In this document: positions 7,467-64,000 of the stretch, piece after piece | Layout of the letters: every line of letters starts with the position of its first letter | How positions within the stretch are numbered: position 1 is the first letter of the stretch | Assembly (NCBI GenBank): GCA_004431415.1 | Contig: QPMI01000005.1 | Coordinates: 620,001-684,000 of the forward strand | DNA from: Cyanophora paradoxa CCMP329 | Taxonomy: Eukaryota; Plantae; Glaucophyta | Length of the DNA stretch: 64,000 bases | Reading direction: 5' to 3' | Position numbers and translations under genes: made by a program | Notes under the pieces: model-generated | The model's input: only the letters and a program-made list of their open reading frames with translations | Databases searched by the model: none | Told to the model about the DNA's origin: nothing

Positions 7467-10400
7467 CTATGCTAGCGCTGCGCCGAAGCACGGGTTGCTC
7501 TCCTGCGCCCCTTCGGGCGCGTCATCGCCTGCGGCCGTGCACCCAGACGCCGATGCTGGCGACGATATCGATGGCGCTGGCGGGGCGCAGGTCGCGGGGG
7601 GATCCAGAAGCCACCCCACGCCGCCGCCCTGAGCGAACACGCGCCGCAGCGTTTCGTGCGCCCACGTTGCCGCGTCCGCCTGCATCGAGTCAAGGCCGGG
7701 GATGGGCATTGGAAGCAGCGTTAACGTTGAAGCAAGGTACAAAGTGGCGCGCACGATGGCCCCGTGAGGGTCGAAGGGCATCGCAGCCCCCAGGCGGCGG
7801 ATGCTGACAGGAGCCGCACCCGCCATGCTCCAGAGTCGAATGGACCTGTCGTCGCTTCCGGATGCAAGCGTCTTGCCATCCTGTTCAGATCGAGTTCAAA
7901 GCATGAGCGATTGTACGGTAAGATATGTAGGTATGACATTTGCACTGGGGTTCGCCAGCATCAGCCTGAACCCCTCTGCTGAGTTTATTCCGCTAGACAG
8001 CTCGCACCGGAGCGAAAGCCACAGCTGAGATACCAGCCATATGCATGTGCCCTCTGAGGACGTGGAGAAGCGCCCCGCTCGCCACGCTCCACAGCCGAAC
8101 GGAGCCGTCCGCGCCGCCCGACGCCAGCGTTTCGCCGTCCTGTCGTCTCGCTAGAATAAGCAATCACTACAGGCACAGATTTGCAAAGGAAACGCGGCCG
8201 CTCGCACCGGCGAGAATGCCACTGCCTGGCCGACTCCATTATCCTCGTAGAGGCCTAGGACGTGAAGCACGTTGTTCTTAGCAACACTCCACATACGCGC
8301 GGTTCCATCGTAACTGCCTGATGCCAGGGTCTTTCCATCCTGCATTGACCGCAGCCCGTATCACGATTTCGAGTTCGATATGCATATGCATGCGATTGCG
8401 CTTGAACGCTAACGCACAGGCGAGAAAGCCACCGAAATGATGCCGCCTGTGTGTCCCTTAAAAATGCCGAGCGTGGCCCCGTCGGCCACGCTCCACAGTC
8501 GCAACGTCTTGTCCGAGCTTCCTGACACAAGCGTCGTGCAGTCCTACCCGCGGCCGTCTCATGAGCATGCGTTCTAGATGTGAGATCGCGGAAAGCAAGC
8601 CGCTCACCGGCGAAAACGCCAAACAAGTGAATGCAAGCGCATGCCCCTCCAAGATGCAAAGCAATACTTGGTCGACTGTGTTCCAAAGCCGCGCGGTTCC
8701 GTCTTCGCTTCCCGAGGCCAACATTTTGCCATCCTGCACAGCCCAAAACCATACTAGTAAGCAACGCCGATACACAAGCTTAAGCTTTCGCATTTAAATT
8801 TTTGCTTTATGAGCAACTCGTCTTTGCATCTTTCAAAACATCTTCCAAGTTCGCGGGCCGCGGGCCGCACCGGTGAAAAAGCTACTGAATGGATCTTCGC
8901 CTTGTGCCCCTCAAAGACGCAGCGTAGCGCTCCGTCCACCGCGCAATACAGCCGCACGTTGCCTCGCCACGTCCCCAACGCCAGACTCTTGCAGTCCTGC
9001 CCACGCGCAATGCAGCAGGGTCAGCACAAACAAACGTACGACAGCTTAACTCTACGTGCACGATACTTAGAAGTGAATACAGATCAGCCTATTCGCGACT
9101 CAGATCGCTCGCACCGGGGAAAGTGACACAACCCAGCTGCGGATTCGATCTATGTGTCTCTCGAGCTCAATGATGTTGAGCGCGTGCGAAGCCCCGTCTG
9201 CCACACTCCAGAATCGTATGGTACTGTCTCCATGTGATACCAGCGTTTTGGCGTCCTGCGGAGATTGAGCACATCACAAAATTAAGCTCGACTAGCCAAT
9301 GTGTGCCCCTGGCCCCCGCTTTATTTTCGAATGCCTCCTCGTCTATATCAAGAGCTTGTCGAGCCCTCTGATTTATATTGCTTTCTGCATGGGTACATAT
9401 ATATACGCACAGATGTGAATACCAACGCCGTAACTGGACCCTTGTGTCCCCCAGATCTAGAGACGTGGAGCAGCGCCCCGTGGCCATCCGCCTGGTGCAT
9501 ACCCCAGAACCGTACGGTCTCGTCATAGCCGCCAGACATGAGCGATCTTCCATCCTGCAAGCATCGGCGGCATGAGCCTACTAGCGCAGCCATGGCCACC
9601 CGACCGCTTGCAGACGCTGCGCTTCACCGGCAAGAAAGCCACGGACGTAACCCTTGCTTCATGTCCGCCAAGAACACGCACAAGTGTTCCATCTGCAACT
9701 CTCCACAGCCGCACTGTTCTGTCGTCACTTCCCGATGCCAATGTTGCGCCATCCTGCACGTGCATGTGACATATGCATCATTTGCAATTGCGAAGGACCA
9801 GTCAGAGAAACGTCAATAGAGCGGCATATATGCATTGATTTCAGTTGTGCATGTCTCTACACACTTTAACATAGCTCTCGCTTGCAGACCTCAAAATATA
9901 GAGCTCTCAGTTTGCAATTGGCGCACCGGCGAGAATGACACAGAGGAGACGGAATTTGCGTGCCCCTTCAGGGAGAAGAGGAGTGCTCCATTTGCAGCGC
10001 TCCAGAGCTGGACACTGCCGTCCAAACAGCCGAACGCCAGCGTTTGTCCATCCTGCCCGGCTCCGAATCTTCAACATGAGCTCGAGTTTCCTCTCCAACA
10101 AAAGCAAAGTTATAAGCCGCCGCACCGACGAGAAAGCCGCCGTCTGAATGCCCAAAATGCGCTCCTCCGGCTTGAGGACGCGCAGTTCTGTCCCGTCCGT
10201 CGCGCTCCACAGCCGCGCAGCCATGTCACCGCCTCCTGACACCAGCACTGCGCCGTCCTGCATGACGAGCGAGTGTTAGACCCTTGCAAAACTTATCGAA
10301 GTTCCAAAAGCGTTTGAAGTACGCACTGGCGAAAAGGCGACGGAGTGGACCGCTTTCGCGTGCCCCTTGAGGGTACGGAGAGATGTCCCGTCCGCCGTGC

Positions 10401-13400
10401 TCCACAGCCGCACAGTCTTATCCCGGCTGCCTGATGCCAGAGTTGCGCCATCCTGCCGCATTGCAAGAATGAGCTTTGATTCGCCCATGAATATGGGTCA
10501 CGGGAGTTTTTGCACCGGCGAGAAGGCCACTGAGATCACCCAGTCCGTGTGCCCCTCTAACTTCAGGATGCGGGGCTGATCACGAGTCCCATCCTCGAAA
10601 TTCCACAGCTCGACGACGGCGTTCTCACCTCCCCATCCCAACATTGTGCAATCCTGAGCAACGCGTCAACAGCAGGATCCGGATGCATATGCATGCACAT
10701 GAAGATACATCAACAGCAGGATTCATGATTATGAAAGTATTGAATGTCGCTCTCACCGCAGATAAAGCGACAGACAATACGCGCCGGTACCGGTCGCTCG
10801 CCTGCATACGTCGAACCTCGCGATTCGTCTCGACATCGACAAAGCAGACCGCCCCGGCCGAGCATCCAGCGACTATATAGCGGCCATCCTGGAAGAAAAG
10901 CTCACATAAGGATCGATGAAACAAAAGAAACGCATAAAGATCGCACCCGTGCGACTGCAACGCTGAGCACAGCAGAGTCCATCTCACACGCCGGCCTCAC
11001 GCTGAGGCGGCAGCCGGTGAGGTCAGCGCCGCGCAGGTCGGCCCCCGCGAGGTTCGCATCGTCCAGCAGCGCGCCGCTGAGGTCCGCCCCGCGCAGGTCC
11101 GCCCCCGCGGCCTCCAGCCGGAACAGGTCCGCTCCAGGCACCCGAATGCCCCGCAGCTCCTTGCCCGCGAACGAGGTACCGGCTGCGCGATTGTAAGCCG
11201 GAAGTTAAAAGTATCAATTCAATTCATGATCAGAAGCAGAAATATTGCGGACCATGATTCAAGATCGTCATCGCATTTGCGGCTGCGAATAGCGCGATTT
11301 GTGAATCATCTTGCACCGACTTCCGCACGCATTCCCACAGCGCCTGCACACGAAACCCGATTGAATGAGGGCAAATACGTGCACACAATCGCATAGTACT
11401 AGTTCGCACCTCGACAAAGGGCGGGTCGGAGCGGGCGCGGTCGGCGAGGAACCGCATCACAGCCGAGTCGTCCACCAGCAGCCGGCGGCCGAGCCCGCCC
11501 ACGACACCCGCCCCGCTCCCCATCCACCTGCGCAATCGAAGGCGATTCTAAACACCTTTTCAAAGGCAACAATATTTCAGAAGCGGACGTTGCGGATGGG
11601 CGACGCAGGGAGCCGGCCGCGGCGGACGTGTTGGCCGCGAGGCGGGCGTCGAGGTACGGTAGGATGCTGTCGGCGAGGAAGTACTCCTTGAGCGACGCGT
11701 GCACAAAGCTGTACGAGGCTTTGCCGTCGCCCTCCGACACCGTCTTCAGCGGAGAGGCCTTGATGAACTCCTGGTTCTTCTCGCTGGTGAGCAGCATGGC
11801 GGCCTTCGCCGTCGGATCCGGCTCTGTCTCGTCGGCATCTGTGTGCCTTTTCTTCAGATTCAGCACGCCGAACGAAAGCTGCAGATCCACAGTCAAGACG
11901 GTCGTGGCCTGCAAGGGTTTCAATATTAGATAGAGGTACGAAAACCAATATTTATGCCCTAGCGCGTGCGCGCTACAGGTTGCTATAGCGCACCAGCTGG
12001 TCCATCAAAATGGCGAGAGCCCGGCAGAAGTTCCGGCAGTTGACGGCGAAGCGCTTGAAGCGCCCCTGCCCCACCCGCTTCTCCTCCTCCCGCTTGAACA
12101 ACCCGGCAACGAACGCGTCGTACACGTCGCGCAGCAGTACGCGCACAGAACCTTCCTTCTGCTTCTCCTGCCTGCACCCGCATGACCAGAATCAGCCGTC
12201 GTGTGCCTGCAACGCCGCTTTTCAAAAAGCAGTACGAGCGCACATCTTCTTGTCGATGGACGGGAGCTCCTTGCAGGCGATGGAGAGCACGAAGGGCGTG
12301 CGGATGATGTCGAGCAGGCCGAGGATCGTGTTGATCTGCTTCATGTACCAGTCGAAGCCGCGCTCGGGGTCCGGATTCGCGGCGAGCCACTGCCCCACGT
12401 ACGCTCCAATCTGGTCCCGGTTGAATGGGCACGTCCACGCCTCGCAGACTTGCTTGGGTGCCCCGATCGAATCCAGCAGGAAAAAGCTCTGCAGCGACGA
12501 AAACAGGCTCAAACGTTTCGAATCATCACGAAAAGAGGGGCGACGCAGATATTTCGATTTGAATCTGTGCACCTTTGGATCGGCGCCGAGGCTCGGGAGG
12601 TACTGGGCGCGGCAGGCGACGACGACGCGGGCGGCCCACGACTTGAGCTTCGGGAACAGGATGTGCAGAGCGTCGCTCTTCCCTGTCTGCGAGGCGCGAG
12701 GTCAGAGGGGCCGGTCAAGAGCGAAACGCGACGTGCGTGCAGCGTGCACGCGCCTCGTCGAAGCCGTCCAGCAGCGCGAGGAGCTTGACCCTAGCGGCGT
12801 TACCGGTAACGAGTCTGCAGTCAGGAACGAAGATAGGTTTGGGGCCCTCAGGGCCAGCGGCCCCCGCACCTCTGCTGCAGCGCCTCCCTCAGCTCGCGGT
12901 CGCCGTCGTGCAGGCCCGCCTTGGCGACGAGCTCCTCGACGAGGTCCAACTCCGAGACGGTGACGGCGGGCAGGGAGACGAGGACAGGAAAAGGCGAGCC
13001 CGCGGCCGGGCGCCACTGCTCGAGCAGGCGCCTGTGCAGCCGCCGCAGGCTCGTCGTCTTGCTGCAGCCGGAGTCACCTGCGCGGCCGTGGGTGCAACGT
13101 CAGTTCGAGAAATGGATGAAGATTCTAGTGAAGAACGTAAGCCAACCGCGCGAGGCCTGACCTGTGAGAAGGAGCACGCGGTGGCCGGCTGTGCTCCCGC
13201 CGGGCGCGGCGCCGGAGGCCGCGAAGGCGTCGAGGGCGGCGTCGAGATCGAAGCGCCGCCCCTCGTCCGCCGCGAGTCGACCATCGATGTCCGCCGCAGC
13301 ACGCGCCGGCACGTACAGATCGCTCTCCATCTCCTCTCTGTACCGGTCGAGCAGCTCCTCCCGCGCCTGCTTTGCTGTGAGCCCGTGCACGGCGAACGGG

Positions 13401-16400
13401 GCGCCAGCGCCACGGCAAGACGCACCCCAGAGAGCACATCGCTCAGCCGCTGCTCGGGATTGCGCTCCTCCTCCGCCTTGAGAGCCGCAAGGACGAGCGC
13501 GCTCCGCCCCGCGGTCCCCGAAGATGGATGCGCCGTCCCCCGCACGCGCGCGGCCGGCTTGAGGCGTCTCGCTGGACCGGCACCGGCCTCGAGGCCGATG
13601 CTGAAGTGCGCCGCGGCCTCCTCCACCGCCGCCCGCGCAGCCTCCAGAGCCGCCAGCCGGCGGAGTGCCTGCAGGGCTGCAGCTGGCGCAGAGCCGACAC
13701 TGTCCAGAGCCGCGACGTGCGCCAGCGCCGCCGCCGCCGCCCGCAGCGACGCGGCGCCGTCCTTGAGCCCCGCCGCCGCCTCCGCGCACGCCTCGAGAAG
13801 CTTCACTGCGGAATCCGCGGCGGCCGCGGCGCGTCCGCCGTCATCCGCGCGCTCCACGGCCTGCGACGGCGTCGGCGTGGGGTCCTTGCGCCGCTGCGAG
13901 GCGGGACGCACGGCGACGAGGGCGGCGCAGAGGGCGAGGGCGAGCTTCCGGCTGCGAGCGACCTCCGCCATCGCTGGCGCGTCCAGCAGCGCCCGCAGCT
14001 CCTCCAGCCGGCCCCGCTCAGCCAGCGTCCCCACCAGCCGCGCCCGCACAAACCTGCAAGGCGGCGTCGGTGCGAAATGCGAACGCTTGAATCGAAATCG
14101 GACAAGGGGGGGCGGACCAGGCCTCGGCTTTCTTGGGGTGGTCGGCCCCAGCGATGGTCCGCACGTCGCTCCACATCTCCCGGAGCGCCTCCCGCGCATC
14201 GCCGCGATTCTCCTGCGGGCAATCAGCGCGGGCGATCTCGGGCTCGGCGGGCGGGGCGGGCCTTGATCCAAAAGATGGCGTCGATGACGGTCGTGACGCC
14301 GAAGCTCGCCACCCCCTCCGCCACCAGCTTGCCCGCCCTGTACAGCTTCTCCAGCACCCGCACTGCGCGATATCGATGGACTTTCAGAGAGGAAGGAGCA
14401 CACATGCGCCGCCGGAAGGGCGCACTGGCGGCCTTCGCGCGGCGGACGGCGTCGCCAAAGCGGTCGTAGTCGGAGCTCGCGCGCACCAAGGCCTGCGCGA
14501 GATGGTCAAGCGGGCCGCGCTGCGCTCGGGCGGGGCGCGGGGGCCGGGCGGACCTCGCGCGCAAGGTAGGCCGCCGCCTCCGCCCGCCACGATCCCGCCG
14601 CCTCCGCCTGCTTCGCGATCTCCTTCAGCCGCGCGCTCAGCGGCTTTACGACCGCCTCGTGGCTCAACCGCCGCGCCTCAGCTGCGCTCCCATCAGTGGC
14701 GGCGGAGCGGAGCGGAGGCCCAGGCAAGGGGGCCGGGGCGGGCCTTGGGCGGGGGAGGCGGCGGCGGCGGCGGCCTCGAGGGCGGCGAGGGCGGCGGCGA
14801 CGAGCTCGAGCCGCGCGAGGTCGTCGTGGTCCGCCAGCCCCGCCCCCTTCACCCCCGCCAGCTGCGCCCCCGTCGGAGAGGGTGGCGCTTGCGGAAGAGG
14901 GGGGCAGGGAGTGGGGGTGGGGGGGTGGGGAGGGGGTGCAGGGTGTGTGAAAGGTGGGTGGGAAAGGGAAGAGGAAGCGGAGGGTCGGGGGTAGGGGCGG
15001 AAGCGGGGGGGGGGGAGCCGAACGGGGAGGGCGAGGGGGGGGGGGGGGCGGGGGGGCCGGAGGTAGGAGCGGAAACGGGGGGGGAGGGGGGAGGGATGGC
15101 AACCGGGGTTAGGGCAGAAGGCGGCGGGAGGAGCGGGAGGCCGGGGGTAGGAGTGGAAACGGGGGAGGGGGGGGGGGGGGGGGGCGAGGAGGGGATGGCG
15201 ATGGCGACCGAAACGAGGTGGGAGAGGGAGCCGGGGGCGGGCGGGGACGGGCGGGAAAGGAGGGCGGAGGGAGAGTAGAGACAAGCTTAATAGGCGGAAG
15301 AAGCGAGGGCGGGGGAGGGGCGAGGAAACGGGGGGAGAAGGAGGAGAAGCAGAGAGGGGAGAGCGTAGTCAGATCGGGCGGGGTATCGCACCTGCTCGGA
15401 GCAGAAGTCGATGAGGACGCGCCAGTCCGCCGAAGTGAAGGCGCCGGCGCCCTGCGGGAGGCAGCCGAGCGCCGCCACGAGCGCTGCCAGCACACCGCTG
15501 TTCGCCAGCGCCGCCACCTTCGCCCGTCCGATCAGCTCGTTCACCAGCTGCGCCGGTTCAAAGTCAGGCGCGGCGCGGCGCGGACGGGGGCCGGTCCGTG
15601 TCTAAGAGCGGGCCGGGGGCTCGGGGCGGCGCGCCTCGCGACAGAGCCCCGGGTCGGCGGACGCCAGGAGGCCGCACACGTCCGCCAGGTCCTCCGCGCC
15701 CGGCGCGCCCGTCTCTGCGAAGGCCGAGAGCGCTGCGGCGAGGCTCGGGGCGCGCGGGCGCGCGGGATGGGCGCGATCGAGGACGCCGCACCGCGCTCGC
15801 AGAGCCGCCGCAGCCGCTGCCGCGCGGCGGCGAGCTTCTGCAGCTCGCTGGCGCCGGCGGCTGCCTGCACAACCGGCAGCTGCAGCGCGCGCCCGGCCGG
15901 CCCGTCCGCCGCGCAGTCCATCCGACGGGCGGCGGCCTCGCCGGCGGCGACGAGGCGGAGGAGCGCGGCGAGCTGCGCGACGCTGCGCGCCTCCCGCAGC
16001 TGCAGCGCCCGCAGCTCCTCCAGCGGCGGCCCCGCGCCCAGCGGCGCCGGCGGCTCCTCGGGCTCGCCAGGCGAGTCCGGAATGTCGAGTGACACCTCCT
16101 CCGGATCCAGCGATATGACGTGGACGGGCTGCGGCTTCGCGTCGCATTCTGCAGCGGCCGCGGCTGCTGCGCTCGCGTCTGCAGCTTTCAAGCCGCCGCA
16201 GCTATCGGCCGCGGGTGCTGCGGGGCTCGATGCGGCTGCGGCCGCGGCTTTTAGGTCGGCGGGGGCATGGGAGGCTGGTGCGGCTTCGGCGTCGCGGTCC
16301 GACTCGCAGGCTGCAGTTGCAGGTACCGGTTTCGGGTCGCCGGCGCTATAGCTAGCGCCGGCGGCCGCGAGGGCGGCTGCAGTTGGCGCGGCCGCGGCGT

Positions 16401-16554
16401 TCGAGTCGCAGACCGACTCGCAGGCTACAGCTTTCGGATCGATGGATCGTGCCGCAGCAAGCTCTTTCGGATCGCAAGCTACAGCGGGTGCAGCTGCGGC
16501 TGGGGCTGGAGCTGCAGCTGGGCGCGGTTTGGGCTTGCTGCACCCGCAGCCCAT
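7467..16554 (-). CDS. NLR-like STAND protein copy A: N-acylation motif, ARM-like domain, NACHT, pentapeptide repeat, 14x WD40 (~34 exons)
   Basis: Start MGCGCSKP at 16554. Spliced Walker A-like [14 protein letters not shown], Walker [33 protein letters not shown], winged-helix [23 protein letters not shown] followed by [26 protein letters not shown]40 exons DG..LASGS.D.TVRLW..GH..V.SVAFSP lie between 10887 and 7467. Confidence 0.92.
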
Positions 16555-16989
16555 CGCAGGGGAAGCGGCCGGATGTTGAAGGCACGAAAATCCTCGATGG
16601 AAGAACTCTGCGCACGATCGAGCGCTTCAGCAGCTGTACGCGCGCGGGCCCGGCGATGGAGGGAGCGATCAAATGGCCGGCGCACACGCTCCCGACTCCC
16701 GCAGGCACGGGACCGAGCCTGACAACTGCTGGATCGCTGCCCGCTTCTCGCGCGCTGCTCGCTCTGCTCGCGCTCGCTCGCTCGCTCGCTGAAGCTGATC
16801 AGTGAGTGCTGCAAGCCTTCAACGCGTCGGACGTGCGCCGCCGCCGCTGGCCGCACCAGCGTAGCCCCTACAACGCTTCGCTTCGGCGCCGTCATCACCG
16901 CAAAACCGGACCGGCGCGCCTTTGCCTGTACCCCGCGAGTCTTTTTTTCGGCCGAGCGAGCTTGAGACGCGCGACGACGCTCGATTCCA

Positions 16990-18415
16990 ACACGAAGGCG
17001 CTGGTGGCGAAGAAGCGCGGCGCCCAGCCGGGTGGCGTCGAGGCAGCTTGTCGGCCAAGTCTTCGGTGCGCCACCCGCCAGCGCCGCTGCCGGGGCGCCT
17101 CCGCTGACTTGCATCTGTTATCTGCGCCAGACATGCTCGACAGCGCCTTCGGTTTCGTCAAGAAGGACATCACGGAGAAGACCGGCCGCGGGGTGAGCCA
17201 TTCTGCCCTGTGCGGACGCTGCGGCGTCGCGGCCGCAGCTGCGCACGGCGCTGCGCTCGGGGCCGCTCACTGGCCGCCACTCCGCATCGCAGGCCGTCTG
17301 GATCCGGGTCGCTTTCGCGCTGCAGCTCCGCAGCTCTGCGCGAAGCTTCGGTTGCGAGCGCGCGCGGCGCAGAGGATCGTTAGCTATTCACCCCTATCGC
17401 GGTCTGCTCTCTCCCGCAGCTCCCGCGCGTGCCACAGCCCCGCCGCCCCGGCCCGCTGTGAGCGCTGCTGAGCCACGGCGACGACGGCGTGTGCGCCCTC
17501 GCGGCGCTCTGCGGCCCGGGGCTGCGGCGCCTGAACCTCTTCTGGTCCGCCCCCCCCGCTCCAACGCGAGCGCGCTGCCGCACGCCCGCCCCCGACGCCC
17601 GCCCAGGAGCAAGGAGGTGACGGGGCTCGGGCTGCGGGCGGTGGCGGACCGGGGGCCCCCGCTCTGCGCCCTCAACCTCGGCGGGGTACGCTGCATCATA
17701 GACGAGGACCTGGGATACGCTCCAGCGGTGCGCGCCCGGTCCGCCCCTCCCACCTTCGCCCCGCTCACGCCGCCCCCGCAGCTGCTGCGCCGGGCTGCTC
17801 GAGCTGCGGTCCGCCCGTCCGCCCCCTTTCGCCCCTCTCCCCTTCCCGACCATAGCCAGCCTCCCGACCCCCCGCGGCAGCATGCTCTTCCGGTGCGGGT
17901 GGCTGACGCGGCCGGGGCTGGAGGCGGTCGCCGCCTGCCCGCGCCTCTCCCTCCTCGTTCTCTCGGGCTGCCGCGGGCTCGACCCCGCCGTGCGCCCCGC
18001 CGGCCCCCGCCGCGCCCCTCCCGGCCCGTGATCGGGTACCCCCAGGACCTGGCGCAGATCCCGGCGCTGGCGCCGTCGCTGACGGCGCTGCACGTGTCGC
18101 ACTGCCGCCTCTCCGACGAAGCCGTCCGCGCCATCGGCTCCGGCCTACCCCTCCTCCAGGTCCCGTACCCCCCTGCATCCCGTACCGCCCTCATCTCCAA
18201 CCCGGTACCCCCGCAGGTGCTGAACGTGTCCGGGACGGACGTGACGGACGCGGGCCTGGACTGGGGTACGCCCGCGGAGGGGGGGTACGCGCTGCGGGAG
18301 CTGCACGCGCGGCGGTGCGGGCTGCTGCGGGGCGCGGGGCTGGCGGCGCTGCTGGGGCGGTGCCCGCGGCTCGCGCTGCTGGACGCGGGCTCAACCGGCG
18401 GCTCGACGCGGCCGG

Positions 18416-18447
<32 letters not shown>

Positions 18448-50688: not shown

Positions 50689-53600
50689 ATGGGCTGCGGG
50701 TGCAGCAAGCCCAAACCGCGCCCAGCTGCAGCTCCAGCCCCAGCCGCAGCTGCACCCGCTGTAGCTCGCGATCCGAAAGAGCTTGCTGCGGCACGATCCA
50801 TCGATCCGAAAGCTGTAGCCTGCGAGTCGGTCTGCGACTCGAACGCCGCGGCCGCGCCAACTGCAGCCGCCCTCGCGGCCGCCGGCGTCTCTAGCGCCGG
50901 CGACCCGAAACCGGTACCTGCGACGGCAGCCTGCGAGTCGGACCGCGACGCCGAAGCCGCACCAGCCTCCCATGCCCCCGCCGACCTGAAAGCCGCGGCC
51001 GCAGCCGCATCGACCCCTGCATGCGCAGCACCCGCGGCCGATAGCTGCAGCGGCTTGAAAGTCGCAGACGCGAGCGCAGCAGCCGCGGCCGCTGCAGAAT
51101 GCGACGCGAAGCCGCAGCCCGTCCACGTCATATCGCTGGATCCGGAGGAGGTGTCCCTCGACATTCCGGACTCGCCTGGCGAGCCCGAGGAGCCGCCGGC
51201 GCCGCTGGGCGCGGGGCCGCCGCTGGAGGAGCTGCGGGCGCTGCAGCTGCGGGAGGCGCGCAGCGTCGCGCAGCTCGCCGCCCTCCTCCGCCTCGTCGCC
51301 GCCGGCGAGGCCGCCGCCCGTCGGATGGACCGCGCCGCGGACGGGCCGGCCGGGCGCGCGCTGCAGCTGCCGGTCGTGCAGGCGGCCGCCGGCGCCAGCG
51401 AGCTGCAGAAGCTCGCCGCCGCGCGGCAGCGGCTGCGGCGGCTCTGCGAGCGCGGTGCGGCGTCCTCGCTCGCGCCCATCCCGCGCACCCGCGCGCCCCG
51501 AGCCTCGCCGCAGCGCTCTCGGCCTTCGCAGAGACGGGCGCGCCGAGCGTGGAGGACCTGGCGGACGTCTGCGGCCTCCTGGCGTCCGCCGACCCGGAGC
51601 TCTGTCGCGAGGCGCGCCGCCCCGAGCCCCCGGCCCGCTCTTAGAAAAGGACCGGCCCCCGTCCGCGCCGCGCCGCGCCTGACTTTGGGCCGGCGCAGCT
51701 GGTGAACGAGCTGATCGGACGGGCGAAGGGGGCGGCGCTGGCGAACAGCGGCGTGCTGGCAGCGCTCGTGGGGGCGCTCGGCTGCCTCCCGCAGGGCGCC
51801 GGCGCCTTCACTTCGGCGGACTGGCGCGTCCTCATCGACTTCTGCTCCGAGCAGGTGCGATACCCCGCCCGATCTGACCTACCCTTCTCGCTTCCCCCCC
51901 CCCCCGCTTCCCTCTCCTCCTGCCCCTCTGCCTTCCCCCTCCGCCTCCGCCCCCCCTTCACCTCCCCACCCCCGTCCCCCGCGGGTTAATGCCGCACCCC
52001 CTTCCTCCATTTCCTATCCCCCTTCCGAACCCCCTCACCCATTCGTTCCCTTCCTATCCCCCTTCCGAACCCCTCACCCATTCGTTCCCTTCCCCCTCAC
52101 CCCCATCCCGCGCGCTCCCCCATGACATACCCTCCCCGTGCTGACCCCTCCCCGCCCTGTACCCCTTCTGCTTCCCCATTTCTCCCCCGCCGCCCCACCC
52201 GATTATTCCCCCCCACCCCCTCCCCCCCCGCCGCTTCCCCCGCCGCTTCCTCCCCGTTACCCGTTACTGGCCTTCCCCTTCCCCCGCCCCGCCGCCCTAT
52301 CCTCCCAAGTCACTCCTCAACCCCGCCCCCCCCCCCCCCTCCACCCCTCCCTGCCCTCCACCCCCCTCTACCCCTCCCCGCTCCTCCTTGTGCAGCCCCC
52401 TCCGCCGTTTCCTCCCCCTCCTTCCCTTCCACCCCCCCCCCCCCACTTTCCCCGCCCCGCCCCGCCGCCCTGTTTTCCCCGCCCCGCCCCCTCCCCCCTC
52501 GTTCCCTACCCCTGCCCCCTACCCTCCCCTTCCCCTCCCTCTCCCTCCCCTCCCTCTCCCCTTCCCCTCCCCTCCCCTTTCTCCCCGCCCTCCGACTGGG
52601 GGCCCCCCCACTAACGCTACCCCCACTATCCAAACCTACCCCCCTCCCTCCCTCCCCCCCCCCGCCTACCTCCTCTCCCCCACTCCCCGCTTCCGCGCCT
52701 ACCCCGCTTCCGCAATCCCCGCCCTCTCCGACGGGGGCGCAGCTGGCGGGGGTGAAGGGGGCGGGGCTGGCGGACCACGACGACCTCGCGCGGCTCGAGC
52801 TCGTCGCCGCCGCCCTCGCCGCCCTCGAGGCCGCCGCCGCCGCCGCCTCCCCTGCCGAAGGCCCGCCCCGGCTCCCTAGCCCAGGCCTCCACTTTGCTTC
52901 GCTGCCGCTGATGGGAGCGCAGTGGAGGCGCGGCGGCTGAGCCACGAGGCGGTCGTAAAGCCGCTGAGCGCGCGGCTGAAGGAGATCGCGAAGCAGGCGG
53001 AGGCGGCGGGGTCGTGGCGGGCAGAGGCGGCGGCCCACCTTGCGCGCGAGGTCCGTCCAGCCCCCGCGCCCGCGCCCCGCCCGAGCGCAGGGCGGCCCAC
53101 AACCGTCATGCGCAGGCCTTGGTGCGCGCAGGCTCCGACTACGACCGCTTTGGCGACGCCGTCCGCCGCGCGAAGGCCGCCGGTGCGCCTCTCCGGCGGC
53201 GCATGTACACTCCTTCCCCGCTGAATGTCCCTCGCGCAGTGCGGGTGCTGGAGAAGCTGTACAGGGCGGGCAAGCTGGTGGCGGAGGGGGTGGCGAGCTT
53301 CGGCGTCACGACCGTCCTCGACGCCATCTTCTGGATCAAGGCCCGCCCCGCCCGCCGAGCCCGAGATCGCCCGCGCTGATTGCCCGCAGGAGAATCGCGG
53401 CGAGGCGCGGGAGGCGCTCCGGGAGATGTGGAACGACGTCCGGACCATCGCGGGGGCCGACAACCCCAAGAAAGCCGAGGCCTGGTCCGCCCGCGCCTCT
53501 CTGCTATCGATTCGAAGCGTTCGCATTTCGAGCCGACGCCGCTTTGCAGGTTTGTGCGGGCGCGGCTGGTGGGGACACTGGCGGAGCGGGGCCGGCTGGA

Positions 53601-56600
53601 GGAGCTGCGGGCGCTGCTGGACGCGCCAGCGATGGCGGAGGTCGCTCGCAGCCGGAAGCTCGCCCTCGCCCTCTGCGCCGCCCTCGTCGCCGTGCGTCCC
53701 GCCTCGCAGCGGCGCAAGGACCCCACGCCGACGCCGTCGCAGGCCGTGGAGCGCGCGGGAGACGGCGGACGCGCCGCGGCCGCCGCGGATTCCGCAGTGA
53801 AGCTGCTCGAGGCGTGCGCGGAGGCGGCGGCGGGGCTCAAGGACGGCGCCGCCTCGCTGCGGGCGGCGGCGGCGGCGCTGGCGCACGTCGCGGCCCTGGA
53901 TATTTCAAGCCCCTCGCCTGCAGCAGCCCTGCAGGCACTCCGCCGGCTGGCGGCTCTGGAGACTGCGCGGGCGGCGGTCGTGGAGGCCGCCGCGCGCTTG
54001 AGCATCGGCCTTGAGACCGGTGGCGGTCCAACGAGACGCCTCAAGCCGGCCGCACGCGTGCGGGGGACGGCACAGCCATCTTCGGGGACCTCGGGGCGGA
54101 GCGCGCTCGTCCTTGCGGCTCTCAAGGCGGAGGAGGAGCGCAACCCCGAGCAGCGGCTGAGCGATGTGCTCTCTGGGGTGCGTCTTGCCGCGGCGCCGAC
54201 GCCCCGGCCCGTTTGCCGTGCGCGGGCTCACAGCAAAGCAGGCGCGGGAGGAGTTGCTCGACCGGTACAGAGAGGAGATGGAGAGCGACCTGTACGTGCC
54301 GGCGCGTGCTGCAGCGGACATCGATGGTCGGCTCGCGGCGGACGAGGGGCGGCGCTTCGATCTCGACGCCGCCCTCGACGCCTTCGCGGCCTCCGGCGCC
54401 GCACCCGGCGGGAGCACAGCCGGCCACCGCGTGCTCCTTCTCACAGGTGAGTCCTCGCACAGTCAACTTACTTTCGTCACTGGAAACTGCACCTATATAC
54501 TTCTCAAATTGACATTGCGCCCGTGGCCGCACAGGTGACTCCGGCTGCAGCAAGACGACGAGCCTGCGGCGGCTGCACAGGCGCCTGCTCGAGCAGTGGC
54601 GCCCGGCCGCGGGCTCTCCGTTTCCTGTCCTCATCTCCCTGCCCGCCGTCACCGTCTCGGAACTGGACCTCGTCGAGGAGCTCGTCGCCAAGGCGGGCCT
54701 GCACGACGGCGACCGCGAGCTGAGGGAGGCGCTGCAGCACAGGTGCGGCGAGCCGAAGGACTGAGTGCTCCGAACCTCTCTTCGTTCCTGACTTCAGACT
54801 CGTTCCCGGCACGGTCGCTAGGGTCAAGCTCCTCGCGCTGCTGGACGGCTTCGACGAGGCGCGTGCACGCTGCGCGCACGTCGCGCTTCGCTCTTGACCG
54901 GCCCCTCTGACCTCGCGCCTCGCAGACGGGGAAGAGCGACGCCCTTCACATCCTGTTCCCGAAGCTCAAGTCGTGGGCCGCCCGCGTCGTCGTCGCCTGC
55001 CGCGCCCAGTACCTCCCGAGCCTCGGCGCCGATCCAAAAGTGCACAGATTCAAATCGAAATATCTGCGTCGCCCCTGGATAAGTGACGATTCGAAACGTT
55101 TGAGCCTGTTTTCGTTGCTGCAGAGCTTTTTCCTGCTGGATTCGATCGGGGCACCCAAGCAAGTCTGCGAGGCGTGGACGTGCCCCTTCAACCGGGACCA
55201 GATCGGAGCGTACGTGGGGCAGTGGCTCGCTGCGAATCCGGACCCCGAGCGCGACTTCGACTGGTACATGAAGCAGATCAACACGATCCTCGGCCTGCTC
55301 GACATCATCCGCACGCCCTTCGTCCTCTCCATCGCCTGCAAGGAGCTCCCGTCCATCGACAAGAAGATGTGCGCTCGTGCTTCGAATCCAAAAGCGACGT
55401 TGCACGCGTGCGATTAATGCTGATTATTCTGCCTATGCGGGTGCAGGCAGGAGAAGCAGAAGGAAGGATCTGTGCGCGTACTGCTGCGCGATGTATACGA
55501 CGCATTCATCGCCGGGTTGTTCAGGCGGGAGGAGGAGAAGCGGGCGGGGCAGGGGCGCTTCAAGCGCTTCGCCGTCAACTGCCGCAATTTCTGCCGGGCT
55601 CTCGCCATTTTGATGGACCAGCAGGTGCGCGATAGCAGCCTGTAGCGCGCACGCGCTAGGGCATTCATATTGGTTTTCGTACCTCTAGCTAATCTTGTAA
55701 CCTTGCAGGCCACGACCGTCTTGACTGTGGATCTGCAGCTTTCGTTCGGCGTGCTGAATCTGAGGAAACGGCACACAGACACCCATGAGACAGAGCCGGA
55801 TCCGACGGCGAAGGCTGCCGCGCTGATCACCGACGAGAAGAACCAGGAGTTCATCAAGGCCTCTCCGCTGAAGACGGTGTCGGAGGGCGACGGCAAAACC
55901 TCGTACAGCTTCGTGCACGCGTCGCTGAAGGAGTACTTCGTCGCCGACAGCATCCTACCGTACCTCGACGCCCACCTCGCGGCCAACCCGTCCGCCGCGG
56001 CCGCTTCCCTGCGTCGCACATCCGCAACGTACGCTTCTGAAACATTGTTCGATGCGAAAAGGGTTCGAGAATCGCCCTCGATTGCGCAGGTGGATGGGGG
56101 GCGGGGCGGATGTCGTGGGCGGGCTCGGCCGCCGGCTGCTGGTGGACGACTCGGCTGTGATGCGGTTCCTCGCTGATCGCGCCCGCTCCGACCCGCCCTT
56201 CGTTGAGGTGCGAACGGAGCGATTGTGTGCGCGTGTTGGCCGTCATTCGATCGGGTTTCGCGTGCAGGCGCTGTGGCAATGCATGAGCAAGTCGGCGCAA
56301 GATGGTTCGCAGAGCGCACTATTTGAAGCCGCCAATGCGATGACCATCTTGAACCACGGTCCGCGATATTCCTGCTTTTGAATCGAAATCGATAATTTTA
56401 TTTTTTGCTCACAATCGCGCAGCCGGCACCTCGTTCGCGGGCAAGGAGCTGCGGGGCATTCGGGTGCCTGGCGCAGACCTGTTCCGGCTGGAGGCCGCGG
56501 GGGCGGACCTGCGCGGGGCGGACCTCAGCGGAGCGCTGCTGGACGAGGCGAACCTCGCGGGGGCCGACCTGCGCGGCGCCGACCTCACCGGCTGCCGCCT

Positions 56601-59600
56601 CAGCGTCAGGCCAACGTGTGAGATGAAATCTGAAGTGCGCAGCGTCGCAGTCGTGCGGGTGCGCGCGCTGTTATGCGATTATTCAGTTGCATCCATCTTT
56701 CTGTGAGCTTTGCTTCCAGGATGGTCGCTCTGTAGTCGCTGGATGCGGGGACGGGGCGGTCTGCTTTATCGATGTCGAGACGAATTGCGAGGTTCGACGT
56801 ATACAGGCGAGCGACCGGCCCGTAAAGTCCTTCGCTTTATCTGCGGTGAGATTGACATTCGAAACTTTATGATCATGAATCCTGCCGTTAATGTATCTAT
56901 ACAATCATGTGTGTGCATCCAGATCCTGCTGCTGACGCGTTGCTCAGGATGGCAAAACACTGGGATGGGGAGGTATGAACACCGTCGTCGAGCTGTGGAA
57001 TCACGAAGATGGGACTCAGCCCCGCATCCTGAAGTTAGAGGGGCACACGGACTGGGTGACCTCAGTGGCTTTCTCGCCGGTGCAAAAACTGCCGTGACCC
57101 GTGCGCGAATCAAAACTCATTCTTGCGATGCGACAGGATGGTGCAACTTTGGCGTCAGGGAGCTACGACACGACTGTGCGGCTCTGGAGCGTGGCGGACG
57201 GGGCGCTTCTCTGCACCCTCAAGGGGCATGAAGACACGGTCTCCTCCGTAGCCTTTTCGCCAGTGCATACTGCATACATTTTTGGAACTTCGATAAGTTT
57301 TGCAAGTTTCTCATAATTGCTCGTCATTTTTTTAGGCCGGCGCAGTGCTGGTGTCTGGAAGCATTGGCGCGACTGCGCGGCTGTGGAGCGTGGCGGAGGG
57401 GACAGAACTGCGGGTCCTCACGCTGCAGGTGTCTATAACGGCGGCGGCTTTCTCGTCGGTGCGGCAGCTTAGAACTTCGCCTCTGCCAGAGAGCACCGGA
57501 TGCTCGATCACGAGCTCATGGTTAAGTTGGGGGCCGAGCAGGATGGACGAACGTTGGCGTTTGGCTGTAGAAACGGCAGTGTCCAGCTCTGGAGCGCTGC
57601 AAATGGAGCACTCCTCTTCTCGCTCGAGGGGCACACAGCCTCTATCTCTTCTGTGGCATTCTCGCCGGTGCGCCCAGTTCGTAGTCTACATGTACATGCA
57701 CAACTGAGAGCTATATCGCTCTCTTGACGCCGCTCCTGCACAATTGCAAATGTTAACATATCCACATGCAGGATAGCGCGACCCTGGCATCCGGGAGTTC
57801 CGACAAAACCTTGCGGCTGTGGAGAGTTGCAGATGGGACACTTCTGCGCGCCCTCAGCGGACATAAAGAAAGCGTGAAGTCCGTGGCATTCTCGCCGGTG
57901 AGACGCGCACAGTGTCAGCGAATTGTCGGGTGGCCGTGCATACTGTTAACGTGGCTCTTTGCTCATGTCACCAATGCTTGCAGGATGGAAGATCGCTCAC
58001 GTCTGGCGGCGATGACAAGACCGTACGGTTCTGGAGTATGCACGCGGCGGATGGCCACGCGGCGCTGCTCCGCGTCTCTGAGGGGCACAGAAGTCTAGTG
58101 AAGTCGTTGGCATTCACATCGGTGCGTAAACATGTACATACCCATGCAGATCTAGAAGGCAATTTAATGGGCTTATCTCGTGCTGTGCTAAATCTCAGCA
58201 GGACGCCAAAGAGCTGGTGTCGTATGGAAGATCTATTAGAGGTTCAGACGAGACCGTACGGATCTGGAGTGTCCCAGATGGGACTTCGCTCAACGTGGTT
58301 GAGCCCATGTCCGGGAGACACACGGATGAGAAGATCTGTGCTGCTTCACTTTTCCCAGTGCGAGCCATCCGAGTTCAAAATATGTCATCCAGTATAGTCA
58401 TATATATACATATTTAAATCATCATCTATAATCATAAGTACAGTCTATATAGCTAGCTGTCTTTCGTTTGCATCTATAATATTAATCATAAGTACGTGTA
58501 CAGTCTAGCTGTCTTTCGTTTGTGCTTACGCGGCCGAGTTGCACGTGGGCAGGACGGCAAGAGTCTGGCGTTGGGGACGTCACGAGGCAACGTGCGGCTG
58601 TGTAGCGCAGTGGACGGAGCACTACAATGTATCTTTTCGGGACACAATAAAATGATTGTGTCAGTAGCTTTTTCCCCGGTGCGGCCCGCAGAGAATCTTT
58701 GGAAGATGTGAACAAGACTTCAGCTTTCTCCTGATGCAGATGCAAAACTTGTGTACCGGTGATGCTTATGATTTCATGCTGCGCAGGATGGCAACATGTT
58801 GGCCTCTGGAAGCAGAGACAAAACCGTGCGGCTTTGGAATGCAGTCGACCAGGTATTGCTTCGAGTCTTGGAGGGACATGTGCTTGAAGTCACTTCTTTG
58901 GCGTTCTCGTCGGTGAGCGGGTTGCTTTTCGCGATCTGACATCTAGAACACATGCTCACGAGAAGGCCACGGGTAGGACTGCACGATGCTTGTGTCAGGA
59001 AGCTCGGACAAGACGTTGCGACTGTGGAGCGTGGCTGACGGGGCAGCGCTCGGCATTTTCAAGGGACACACGAGCTACATTTATTCGGTGGCTTTCTCGC
59101 CTGTGCGCAAGCGTTTAGTGCTTGTGCACAAGCCTTTAGACTCGAAATGTGATACGGGCTGCGGTGGATGCAGGATGGTAAAATCCTGGCATCGGGCAGT
59201 CACGACCGAACCGTGCGAATGTGGAGCGTTGCTAAGAAAGAAGTGCTTCACGTCCTTGAAGACGATACTGGAATCGTCATGGCAGTGGCATTCTCGCAGG
59301 TGCGAGCGGCTGCGTTTCTAACTATATGCCCTAGCTATAGCTAGAGCTCGAGGCTCACAAATCCTCTGGATCGGAGCCCTGTACCTGGTGCAAGCAGACG
59401 CGCTTCTAGCTATATAGATTTATATTTTTTTGGACCTTCGGATTCTATATTCATCGCTTATTCGAGCGAGACGGCAGGATAGCGAAACGCTGGCGTCGGG
59501 CGGCGCGGACGGCGCCGTGCGGCTGTGGGGCGTGGCGAGCGGGGCACACCTCCGCGTCCTCAGGGGGCACACGGATATAGTTTCTGCTGTGGCTTTCGCT

Positions 59601-60182
59601 CCGGTGAGAGCTGTCTGGGGGAAAACTTTTAATTTAGCTGTAGGGGTCAGGCTGAGTAATATTATATATGAGGCTAGCGAACCCCAGCTCACATTTTACA
59701 TTTACATAGCTAAGCGCACCCCAGTTCATCATTTTATACTTGCAATGCTAATTATAAGCGTTTGAATCCGATCCGAACAGGATGGCAAGACGCTGGCATC
59801 CGGCAGCCACGACGAGTCCATCCGACTCTGGAGCGTGGCGGGTGGGGCCCCTGTCAGCATCCGCCGCCTTGGGGCTGCGATGCCCTTCGACCCTCACGGG
59901 GCTATCGTGCGCGCCACTTTGTACCTTGCTTCGATGCTGCTTCCAATATTTTTCCCCTGCCCTGAACCTCTGCAGGCGGACACGGCGACGCAGGCGCACG
60001 AATTGCTGCGGCGCGTGTTCGCTCAGGGTGGCGGTGTGGGGTGGCTTCTGGATCCCACCGCGACATCCACGCCGCCAACGTCGTCGATATCGATGCCTGC
60101 ATCGGCGCCCGGATGCACGGGCGACGACACGCCAGAAGGCGCGCAGGAGAGCAACCCGTGCTTCGCCGCAGCGCTTACATAG
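50689..60182 (+). CDS. NLR-like STAND protein copy C: N-acylation motif, ARM-like, NACHT, pentapeptide, 14x WD40
   Basis: Same motif series and exon structure. Walker A exon junction at 54447/54535, [12 protein letters not shown] at ~55903, WD40 exons 56720-60182. Confidence 0.92.
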
Positions 60183-61574
60183 TAGACTCCAGCCCCAATT
60201 TGCAATCTCTTATATATATAATTATGATCGATATGAAATCAACACATGTACATATCTCGAGGGTTCCGAGCTCTGGCCCATATGCAGGATCCTGCGCCGC
60301 AGGATCCTGCAGCCCTGCAGGCGCCCCTCTAGATCTGGACCGCCGGGGCCGTGCGGCCACGGGCGGCGAGCCAGCGCAGGTACACCATCTCGCTCGCTGT
60401 CAGAACGCAGCGCTAGCGTTTGGTATGATCACGACACCTCGGACTGCAAAGCTCAACAGAGTGGGGATGGGGGAAGGGGGAAAGGAGGGGGGGGGGGGGG
60501 GGGGGGGGGGGGGAAGGCTGGGGTGACCTTGTGTATGCATAGGGGCAGGGGGGCGCCGGGGCAGGGGGCGGGGGGGCAGGGGGCAGGGGGGCATATATAG
60601 GGAGAGAGGAGCAGGGGGCAGGGGGCGCTGCCCCTGCCGCCCCGTCACGAGTCAGGCCCTTCACTTAACGAGCCGGGAAGGGATTACTAAAGCCGGCGGG
60701 CGCCGGGGCGGGCAGTCGAACTGCAAACGACGGCGAACGACAGGTCGAGCACGAGGACCAGTCATAAAACTGACGCTAGTATCAACACTACGATCAGAAT
60801 TCGAACCAGACTGAACTAAACTAGAAGACGGAGAACGCTGGCGCCGGAGGGATACAACCGGCTTTGGGCCATGCATATGGCCAGCGGCGATATTTTTATT
60901 TATAGCATACGTATCTTTAATTTGATCATGAGTTCTAGATTTGCAGAATGTCAAGGGGGTGGATTAGCTCTAGTTCACCCCATCTTCTGGCGTTTGGGAC
61001 CTCAGGAAGGAAGCGGGACCTCAGGGAATGCATATGGGGGGAAATCAAGAAGCGTCGAGTCGAGAGGGGCGGCGTCAATTTTTATACAGTATCTTTGAGT
61101 TCTGCACTGCAGCAGAGTGGCCCAGTGGCCCAGTGACATGTTGGCAGCTCGGGCTCCACGGAAGTCACTGAGTCCCTGTCACTACATGTTCGTGTTTGTT
61201 CATGATCATCGGTTGCTGTTGCAATTGCTTGTTCAAGCAGCCGCAACAGCCGCGGCCAATTAAATTTCACAGCTGCAGCTCTGTTCAAGGTTGCTTGTTC
61301 AAGCACTGCCAGGCTGATCATGATCAGGTCTACGTAATTCTCAATATCGACCGACTCGGATTTGATCAATATCTCATTTCACAATTCGATCAATTTTTAC
61401 AGCTGCAGCTCTGTTGCTTGTTCAAGCACTAGCACTGCCAGGCTGATCAGGTCTAGGTAATTATACTCAATATCGATCGACTCGGATTTGATTGATATCT
61501 CATTTCACAATTCGAACACAAGGAGCCATGGCCATGGCCATGACCAGCGACACCCTCAGATCTCCTAGGCTAGG

Positions 61575-64000
61575 CTAGACGAAGGCGTCGGGGCCGATGG
61601 CCGTGGCCCCTCCGACGCGCTCCCGCGAGTCCGGCTCGAACCGCGCCAGCAGCCACTGCGGTGAGAGTCGGGCGGGGCCGCGCCGGGCCGGCCCGGGCCG
61701 GGGCTGAGGGGGCGCGGAGGCGCACCTGCACGCCGGGGGCCGCCGCCTCGAGCCGCCGGGCCGCCGCCTCGAGGCCCAGCACCTCCCGCCCCGTCCTGCG
61801 GGCCGGGCGCGTCAGGGCGGGCGGGCGCTGGGGCGGGCGGGGACTCCGGAAGGGCGCGCGGCGGAGTGGAAGCGGCGCTCACGGCCGAAGACGGCGGAGA
61901 GGAGGCGCGGGCAGGCGGCGGCGAGGCGCGCCAGGGTCGGGAGGGAGAGGGCGGGGGGCGGGTCCGGGCCCTCGCCCCCCGGGCGCGGCGGCGGCAGGAG
62001 GCACGGGCGCGAGAGCTCGAGCCGCTCGAGCCGCCGGCTGCCCGCCGCCAGCGACTCCACCAGCGCGTCCCCCGCCTGCGAACGAAGGTTAGGCTCAGAG
62101 TGAAATTCTTAGAGATTCTAGCTTAGACGTTCTTCTTTGTGAGATTCTTTGACGTTCTAGCTTAGATCTTACGATTCTAAGAGCGTTCTAGCTTATAAGT
62201 TGATTTTAAGATTATGGATACTTAGGATCGGGGCGGGCCTGGTCGACGCGGAAGAGTTTGGCGACGCGCAGGCGCGGCATGCGGCGCGGGTCCAGCGCCG
62301 TCCCTGCCCCCCCGTCAGGCCCCGGGGGGTACGGGGTACAGGGCCGGGAGGGGGGTACGGGCGCACCGAGGTCGCCGAGGGCGCCGCTCGCGTTGAGGAG
62401 CTCGAGGGCGAGGGGCGGGCCCGGCGGGGCGGGCGGCGGCCAGGCGGGGGCCGGCGAGGGCCCCACGCGGCGGAAGGCGAGCGAGAGGGACCGCAGCCGC
62501 GGGCAAGAGGCGAGGAGGGCCCGCAGCGCCGGCGCCAGGTCCGCAGAGGCCGCCGCCGGCGCCGACGGGTCGCCGAAGGGGTCGGCCGGGCCGAAGGGGC
62601 CGAAGGGCGGCCCGCCGGTGACGCCGGGCGGCAGGCGGCACGCGTAGCGGTCGAGGGTCAGCTCCTCGAGCCGCGGGCAGCACGCCGCCACCGCCGCCAC
62701 CGCCCCGGCCCCCGCCCCGGGGCACTGCGATCAGGCGAAGCGCGTGGTCGGGAGGGTACGGGCGGAGGCGCGGAAGGGGTACGCGCGCACGTCGGTGAGG
62801 TCGAGGCGGGTGAGGTTCGGGAGCCGCGCGGCCGCCGCAGCGACGAACGCGTCCGTCGCCCACGGGCACTGCGGCGGGTGGGGGGTACGGTGTTCGACGA
62901 TCGGGGGACGGGAGAAGCGGGGCGGGGTACGCACGTCCTCGAGGGCGAGGGACTGGAGCGTCGGGGGCAGCGCGGCGGCGGCGGCGGCCTCGGCGCCCGG
63001 CGGGGCGGCCTCGGCGAAGGGCGCCGGGCACGAGGAGAGGTCGAGGGAGCGCAGCGGGGCCGGCGGGCCGCGAGGGCGGCGACGGCGCCGGCCGCGTCGA
63101 GCCGCCGGTTGAGCCCCGCGTCCAGCAGCGCGAGCCGCGGGCACCGCCCCAGCAGCGCCGCCAGCCCCGCGCCCCGCAGCAGCCCGCACCGCCGCGCGTG
63201 CAGCTCCCGCAGCGCGTACCCCCCCTCCGCGGGCGTACCCCAGTCCAGGCCCGCGTCCGTCACGTCCGTCCCGGATACGTTCAGCACCTGCGGGGGTACC
63301 GGGTCGGGAAGGAGGGGGTACGTGGTGCGGGGGGTACGGGACCTGGAGGAGGGGTAGGCCCGAGCCGATGGCGCGGACGGCTTCGTCCGAGATGCGGCAG
63401 TACGACACATGCAGCGCCGTCAGCGACGGCGCCAGCGCCGGGATCCGCGCCAGGTCCTGGGGGTACCGGATCAGGGGCCAGGATGGGCGCGGCGGGGGCC
63501 GGCGGGGCGCACGGCGGGGTCGAGCCCGCGGCAGCCCGAGAGGACGAGGAGGGAGAGGCGCGGGCAGGCGGCGACCGCCTCCAGCCCCGGCCGCGTCAGC
63601 CACCCGCACCTGAAGAGCCTGCGGGGGCGGCTGGTCGGGAGGAGGAGAGAGGCGAGAGATTGGGGGAGAGGGGGTACGGGCGGACCGCAGCTCGAGCAGC
63701 CCGGCGCAGCAGCTGCGGGGCCGGCGTGAGCGGGGCGAAGGTGGGAGGGGCGGGCGGGGCGCGCACCGCTGGAGCATGTGCCCCAGGTCCTCGTCCATGA
63801 TGCAGCGTACCCCTCCAAGGTTGAGGGCGCAGAGCGGGGGCCCCCGGTCCGCCACTGCCCGCAGCCCGAGCCCTGTCACCTCCTTGCTCCTGGGCGGGCG
63901 TTGGGGGCGGGCCGGCGGGAGGGCGCTCGCGGCGGAGCGGAAGGGCGGACCAGAAGAGGTTCAGGCGCCGCAGCCGCGGGCCGCAGAGCGCCGCGAGGGA
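61575..64000 (-). CDS. Cys-containing LRR gene copy D (5' end beyond the window)
   Basis: Same LRR exons. Stop at 61575-61577 lies 14196 bp from the stop of copy C; one apparent C-run indel is shared with C. Confidence 0.7.

Follow-up and report, generated by a model that had tools for sequence, protein, structure and literature searches.

The nuclear genome of the glaucophyte Cyanophora paradoxa contains, within the 64,000-nucleotide (nt) stretch analyzed here (the window), three paralogous genes for proteins that combine a NACHT module with pentapeptide and WD40 repeats, two of them standing head-to-head with a complete leucine-rich repeat (LRR) gene. We think it probable that they are NLR-like STAND NTPase genes in an array of recent origin that continues to recombine, and that the LRR gene is an FBXL-type neighbor of the ancestral copy that was carried along. 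The architectural kind is known; the lineage is new. A first-pass annotation, made from the sequence of the window alone, had read the genes as an acylated NACHT-pentapeptide-WD40 family and an LRR family, and these domain calls proved accurate, with support for NACHT from Pfam, the PDB and a fold model. Its broader proposal of a birth-and-death receptor array in a eukaryote that looked like neither a plant nor a fungus fits the segmental duplications, conversion mosaics, open reading frames and at least ten paralogues described below.

Each NACHT protein starts with the motif MGCGCS and continues with an ARM-like helical region and the NACHT module, which a short linker of pentapeptide repeats joins to about 14 WD40 repeats. 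Genes of the window bear the name of the contig tig00000042, and among 1.84 billion protein representatives searched with the exon open reading frame (ORF) at 54926-55366, a perfect match (100%) was obtained to a protein of 1823 residues, EukProt EP00741 tig00000042_g15549.t1 (P0001). Searches beyond single exons or ORFs used such database gene models and not joined spliced models of the window exons. Since the exons are short, a Pfam scan of the long window ORFs gave no matches; single exons matched Pentapeptide (PF00805, 1.4e-12), WD40 (PF00400) and AAA_22. At the level of whole models, NACHT (PF05729) passes its gathering score of 26.7 bits marginally, with 27.7 bits for P0001 (residues 740-1240) and 29.2 bits for P0002. 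The PDB searched with a single NACHT region returned P-loop matches only, whereas a profile of 22 family members found NLRC4 (5e-5) along with NLRP1, NLRP9, NLRP5 and NLRP3. The ORF of the NACHT exon had no match in a word-index search of proteins, and PADLOC assigned the Cyanophora NACHT module to no family.

AlphaFold models residues 715-1225 with a pLDDT of 82.8 and a pTM of 0.84, and the best 50 PDB matches of this model in Foldseek are all NACHT modules of animal NLRs, at a probability of 1.00. Autoinhibited NLRC4 and ADP-bound NOD2 lead the list (E 7.7e-11, TM 0.58), and the predicted module superposes on the closed, ADP-bound forms of both. The model thus shows the NBD-HD1-WHD-HD2 fold of the NACHT clade. 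Sequence identity to animal NLRs such as NLRC4, NOD2 and NLRP3/9 is only 13-16%; unlike these, the Cyanophora proteins have WD40 repeats instead of LRRs as the sensor and carry no CARD or PYD. Taken together, Pfam, the PDB profile search and the confident fold model confirm the predicted NACHT module as one of STAND NTPase type.

Its motifs can be read directly. Walker A is GDSGCSKT (54537-54560 in gene C, around 39893 in B and around 13100 in A), in which Lys and Thr are kept and the last Gly of GxxxxGK[ST] is replaced by Ser, so that it departs from the canonical motif. GDSGCSKT is shared by all nine close paralogues in Cyanophora, the most distant at 42% identity, whereas bacterial relatives have GDSGAGKT. 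Because it is conserved, the Ser-for-Gly P-loop is probably a functional, family-specific variant. Walker B, at 54823-54858, has the extra acidic residues that mark NACHT domains and is followed by the sensor-1 stretch VVVACR; a winged-helix motif of the FxHxSLxEY type is present as well. In gene C the pentapeptide stretch lies at 56422-56658 and the WD40 exons at 56720-60179.

MGCGCS opens all three copies. With Met-Gly at positions 1-2, a Ser/Thr residue at position 6 and Cys near Gly2, it is predicted to be a dual-acylation motif (myristoyl plus palmitoyl), and it is identical to the N-terminus of Lck. Starts resembling MGC/MGG...CC are found in two other paralogues. Within the family the N-terminus varies, as seen in P0053 (tig00021433_g21275) and P0040 (tig00001231_g7653); one member of 2781 residues begins with a PH domain, and another begins with MGGVCCKK, a second kind of acylation motif. 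The region between this motif and the NACHT module gives weak ARM_5 matches, and AlphaFold models its residues 250-714 as entirely helical, with low confidence (pLDDT 52).

The three genes share an intron-rich structure. In a three-way alignment of the NACHT copies the introns follow the GT-AG rule and measure 46-100 nt; Cyanophora NACHT genes have 32-35 mapped exons each, with one WD40 repeat per exon. Gene A (tig00000042_g15539) lies on the reverse strand at 7467-16554, with its stop codon at 7467-7469; its model P0038 (1948 residues) maps exactly and starts upstream, at 16895, instead of at the ATG of MGCGCS at 16554. Over the NACHT region its identity to P0001 is 94%. Gene B (g15546) occupies 36232-45812 on the forward strand, and gene C (g15549) follows on the same strand at 50689-60182, where P0001 maps in 32 exons to 50689-60179 with the stop codon at 60180-60182.

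The public models of B and C look wrong in the WD40 part. P0001 leaves out three intact WD40 exons (within 58550-59102) that the model of gene A retains, and P0037, the model of gene B, ends at 43482 although all WD40 exons downstream, as far as 45812, are present and 95% identical to those of C. Because the exons missing from the models are intact, the true proteins should have about 14 WD40 repeats, which is predicted to suffice for two propellers. Gene B also carries a private intron insertion of 258 bp (43531-43788). Its N-terminal exons contain one or two 1-bp indels, which the annotators bridged.

All three NACHT copies look functional. In the frame of P0001 no in-frame stop codon occurs in A, B or C, and exons have diverged by 3.6-7.4% compared with 13-23% for introns, that is, 3-4 times less. 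Between A and C, the ten exon indels are all multiples of three; of the 54 intron indels, 20 are (p = 2e-4). The ratio of nonsynonymous to synonymous divergence (dN/dS) is 0.14-0.21 in the NACHT and winged-helix part, 0.37-0.46 in the N-terminal part and 0.53-0.67 in the WD40 part. As a separate observation, in-frame exon indels between the NACHT paralogues are mostly 6 bp long (C coordinates 50723, 51019, 56813, 58076 and 59258), with the inserted sequence sitting in copy A, in C or in both. Several of these insertions fit the scheme XYZ-revcomp(XYZ)-XYZ, namely CAG-CTG-CAG, GCA-TGC-GCA, ACC-GGT-ACC, TCT-AGA-TCT and CCT-AGG-CCT; such a palindromic 6-bp insertion process adds two codons within coding exons, WD40 repeats included.

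How the array grew can be read from a BLAST search of the window against itself. It resolves three cassettes of 81-95% identity, of which A is inverted and B and C stand in tandem. The tandem unit measures 14.4 kb and occurs at 35046-49425 and 49426-63999, also at 81-95% identity, and the inverted copy is illustrated by 15311-19612 against 51926-47644 (93.7% identical). The NACHT genes are longer than had been judged from the duplicated block, C extending over 50689-60182 and A from 16554 down to 7467. From the NACHT start codons at 16554 (reverse strand, A), 36232 (forward, B) and 50689 (forward, C), the B-C distance is exactly 14,457 bp, as first claimed. Superimposed on these duplications is a mosaic of identity: over the 5' kilobase A matches C at 97-100% and B stands apart, whereas across the WD40 part it is B and C that agree, at about 100%, with A at about 80%, and dS varies between gene regions in line with this pattern. 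The mosaic reflects gene conversion between paralogues. These alignments show that the array grew by segmental duplication, once in inverted orientation and at least once in tandem, and that conversion is homogenizing it in patches.

Beyond the array, the genome holds at least ten members of the family. Besides g15539, g15546, g15549 and g15554 on tig00000042, members lie on five contigs: tig00000076, tig00020902, tig00000248, tig00001231 (g7652 and g7653, adjacent) and tig00021433. The best relatives outside Cyanophora were found in Mycoavidus and other bacterial assemblies, with 26-30% identity over about 580 residues, E-values down to 8e-36 and the same NACHT-pentapeptide-WD40 order; the three bacterial loci inspected (Mycoavidus and two further assemblies) have a plainly bacterial gene context. 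In one bacterial member, P0051, a strong N-terminal ARM_5 domain (1e-88) extends the agreement to all four parts of the build; the N-terminal region of most Mycoavidus members differs from that of Cyanophora. The NACHT-PPR-WD40 kind has been described in Mycoavidus in a preprint that also reports its transfer to Mortierellomycota (Ciach et al., bioRxiv 10.1101/2021.12.02.471044).

By domain order and by homology of the NACHT and winged-helix part, the Cyanophora genes belong to this family. They share with the Mycoavidus and Mortierellomycota proteins the succession of NACHT, winged helix with FxHxSLxEY, pentapeptide and WD40, but differ in being nuclear, in their 32-35 mapped exons, in the N-terminal acylation motif, in GDSGCSKT in place of GDSGAGKT and in forming a duplicated array beside an LRR gene. 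The fungal NWD/HET-E NLRs offer a second comparison. They, too, combine NACHT with a WD40 sensor, form paralogue clusters, homogenize from repeat to repeat and from copy to copy, and have a raised WD40 dN/dS, as do the Cyanophora genes. By contrast, the Cyanophora proteins have no HET, HeLo or other known death domain, their N-terminus is ARM-like, and they possess a pentapeptide linker; no sequence-level match to the fungal NWD/HET-E NLRs was obtained in these searches. An allorecognition role in a unicellular alga is unlikely.

The second gene of the cassette was reconstructed from an alignment of copies A, C and D and by comparison with an unlinked LRR paralogue of 268 residues, P0036 (tig00020951_g16450). 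It comprises 13 inferred exons for about 600 residues. LRR-A lies at 17133-20232 on the forward strand, with a stop codon TAA at 20230-20232; LRR-C is complete at 47379-50119 on the reverse strand. A fourth copy, LRR-D (61575-64000, reverse strand), runs off the end of the window as first noted: its exons 3-13 are present, its 5' end lies beyond, as would any NACHT partner, and it stands tail-to-tail with NACHT-C. The second cassette has only a relic, LRR-B (35024-35646, reverse strand), which the four-way alignment places at the left edge of the 14.4-kb tandem array. It retains exons 1-4, has lost the exon-2 acceptor and 2 nt of exon 3, and its homology ends at 35024-35046. No other LRR exons were found in 20300-35100 apart from an orphan fragment on the opposite strand: an 80-bp copy of the last LRR exon (29486-29565, forward strand), 86% identical to 20127-20198 and far from other LRR exons, which may be the footprint of an older rearrangement. 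LRR-A carries a private insertion of about 330 bp with very long poly-C tracts (19604-19947, forward strand), at a position where C and D have an intron.

The repeats are cysteine-containing LRRs of 26 residues (LRR_6 4e-14, FBXL2 2e-10, FBXL17 8e-8), and features from a language model place the protein with clusters of FBXL15/16. It has in common with FBXL2, FBXL15/16/17, TIR1 and the F-box-less AMN1-type proteins the array of cysteine-containing repeats typical of the FBXL group, but has long Pro/Ala-rich inserts, and no F-box was detected in its inferred 5' exons. The 5' ORFs at 17133-17468 and 17197-17600 give no F-box match, the 5' exons being read from sequence in such a way that a small exon could be missed. 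A classification as an F-box protein was rejected for want of an F-box, and the LRR-gene exons contain neither a P-loop nor another nucleotide-binding domain. For dN/dS, the exon alignment columns were concatenated and all columns used, with the frame restored. The resulting values are 0.17-0.20 (p = 2e-8 against neutrality), without a stop in the inferred frame, and substitution divergence in the exons is 3-4 times below that of flanking non-exon sequence. The first-pass annotation had named a ratio near 1 as evidence against its proposal; the ratio found is about 0.2. We regard the LRR gene as real and under purifying selection, with a separate role of its own.

Three other explanations of the window were weighed. 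That B, C and D are mis-assembled haplotypes, or repeats collapsed or expanded in assembly, was a possibility already raised with the first annotation. Long-read contig names (tig...), the high similarity of the copies and the near identity of B and C over 56600-58170 would agree with it, but the intron divergence, the private indels in NACHT-B and LRR-A and the distinct flanks (a CBM20 gene to the left of B, and the inversion of A) mark the copies as paralogues, and on these grounds we rejected the idea as barely credible. The mosaic of identity, typical of gene conversion, the separate public models for g15539, g15546 and g15549 and the 62-76% of words of 54100-58300 contained in 2012 sequencing runs (of unrecorded kind) speak against it too. 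The inferred LRR exons contain 11 frame-breaking deletions of 1-2 bp (in A coordinates at 17718, 18386, 18453, 18513, 18545, 18884, 19062, 19089, 19463, 19478 and 19505): four in A, among them a 2-bp and a 1-bp deletion in exons 3 and 7, eight in C, two of which are shared with A or D, and one in D, a 1-bp deletion in common with C. LRR-D also has a 9-nt in-frame deletion in common with P0036. The copies in the window may have been inactivated recently, leaving only others, such as that on tig00020951, at work; the low dN/dS would then be a legacy of their active period, or the result of conversion by a copy that still works. One of the deletions (TACATG to TACG at 17718) lies outside any homopolymer, and a comparison of A with C finds no indels of this kind in the N-terminal NACHT exons, which are comparably GC-rich (0 of 23 G/C runs, compared with 10 of 36 in the LRR gene; p = 0.005). 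LRR-B is certainly dead, and a word-index search with the LRR ORF returned only P0036 and no gene model for the locus, although the latter may be explained by the length window of the search (184-586 residues, against about 600). Set against this are the low dN/dS, the reduced exon divergence and the lack of in-frame stops, and the events are all deletions, mostly in G/C runs at 80% GC, the typical signature of long-read consensus errors. We somewhat favor such errors over recent decay as the source of the deletions, and consider a dying passenger unlikely.

A further alternative holds that the two genes are a functional pair, co-transcribed and duplicated as a needed unit, in which the WD40 propellers would watch over the LRR protein as guardee or decoy, or the LRR protein would regulate the stability of the NLR-like protein in FBXL-like fashion; in Arabidopsis, the F-box protein CPR1 controls NLR levels. 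The first annotation had proposed such a co-regulated partner, guardee or decoy on the basis of a divergent LRR/NACHT pair occurring three times about 0.4 kb apart. Three cassettes are indeed present, but only the pairs of A and C are complete, that of B ending in the broken relic, and between the start codons (those of the LRR genes as inferred) we measured 569-585 bp: 578 bp in A (16555-17132), 585 bp in B (35647-36231) and 569 bp in C (50120-50688), with spacer A 97% identical to C and 78% to B. The arrangement resembles the plant pairs RRS1/RPS4 and RGA4/RGA5 in its divergent orientation, short shared spacer and duplication as a unit; yet in those pairs both partners are NLRs, one with an integrated decoy, whereas the Cyanophora neighbor is an LRR-only protein without a nucleotide-binding domain. 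The head-to-head spacing in all copies, the purifying selection on both genes and the retention of two complete pairs favor a functional pair, and the shared 0.57-kb spacer could allow co-regulation. However, the pairs in the window all go back to a single ancestral adjacency, so that the three occurrences count as one observation, and the head-to-head position appears to be inherited and not independently recurrent. The boundary of the tandem unit falls inside the LRR gene, after exon 4, so that LRR-C straddles the point where units 1 and 2 meet (49425/49426), and NACHT-B is apparently intact beside a dead relic. No LRR neighbor occurs at the three bacterial loci inspected, no NACHT paralogue of 1003-3190 residues is listed on the contig of P0036, and the 5' ORFs lack an F-box. 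An NLR-LRR partnership is thus not supported beyond inherited adjacency, and a functional pair is improbable; the fuller version, a co-transcribed and interacting immune module of FBXL-LRR and ARM-NACHT-pentapeptide-WD40 proteins that would make it a plant-independent paired NLR in a glaucophyte, with a receptor of bacterial ancestry, is very doubtful. The better reading is the caveat of the original proposal, that the LRR gene is a passenger in the duplicated segment.

Several points weigh against this view of a recombining NLR-like array with a carried-along, selected LRR neighbor. If the LRR deletions are real, the copies in the window are dying rather than functional, and the 5' exons and start codon of the LRR gene are read from sequence only. 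Two complete pairs have been kept, and the conversion tract between A and C (15311-19612/51926-47644) spans the spacer, the LRR gene and the 5' exons of the NACHT gene; a co-adapted unit would also show conversion across both genes and retained pairs. The comparison of pairing covers the window, three bacterial loci and the contig of P0036, and other Cyanophora NACHT paralogues may yet have an LRR neighbor. The sole hint of expression comes from the 31-mers of 54100-58300, a stretch about two thirds of which is exon: of the words sampled, 0.17-0.31 occur in seven runs that are guessed to be RNA and belong to two studies, and 0.35-0.76 in four 2012 runs of unrecorded kind. These fractions are compatible with spliced NACHT transcripts and are no proof of them. 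Finally, the ligand, oligomerization and signaling in the mechanism outlined next are pure analogy.

For the array of NLR-like genes, signs of an immune role are indirect and consist in the expansion of paralogues, the conversion mosaics and the raised dN/dS of the WD40 part. By analogy with NLRC4, NOD2, the fungal NWD/HET-E proteins and bacterial NACHT proteins, the WD40 propellers would hold a membrane-tethered protein in a closed, ADP-like state. Binding of a non-self or danger ligand by the propellers might then lead the NACHT module to exchange its nucleotide and oligomerize, upon which the clustered ARM-like N-terminal regions could signal.

Other features of the window are unrelated to the array. 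A gene on the reverse strand at 30350-32986, to the left of the LRR-B relic, encodes a CBM20 starch-binding domain (PF00686, 2.4e-7) followed by an Ala/Pro/Ser-rich ORF of 707 codons with a coiled-coil stretch. The segment 5566-6870 is about 80% GC, internally repeated at an offset of about 100 bp with 72-78% identity, and open in all frames; it has no Pfam match, nor have the other ORFs in 1-7000 and those in 22800-28200.

Glaucophytes form one of the three lineages with primary plastids, and our literature search found no paper describing NLR-like receptors or genes of this kind in glaucophytes or Cyanophora. The window shows a multi-copy, selection-maintained and recombining family of ARM-NACHT-pentapeptide-WD40 genes, whose only detectable outside relatives are in endofungal bacteria, the reported source of the same kind of gene in Mortierella fungi. 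Pairing of an NLR with an LRR protein, a proposal based on adjacency, would matter if it proved true. What the family itself offers is a third, intron-rich eukaryotic lineage in the story of the NACHT-PPR-WD40 proteins, a conserved non-canonical P-loop, GxxGxSKT, that is open to biochemical tests, and an example, from a unicellular alga, of birth-and-death evolution of the NLR type.

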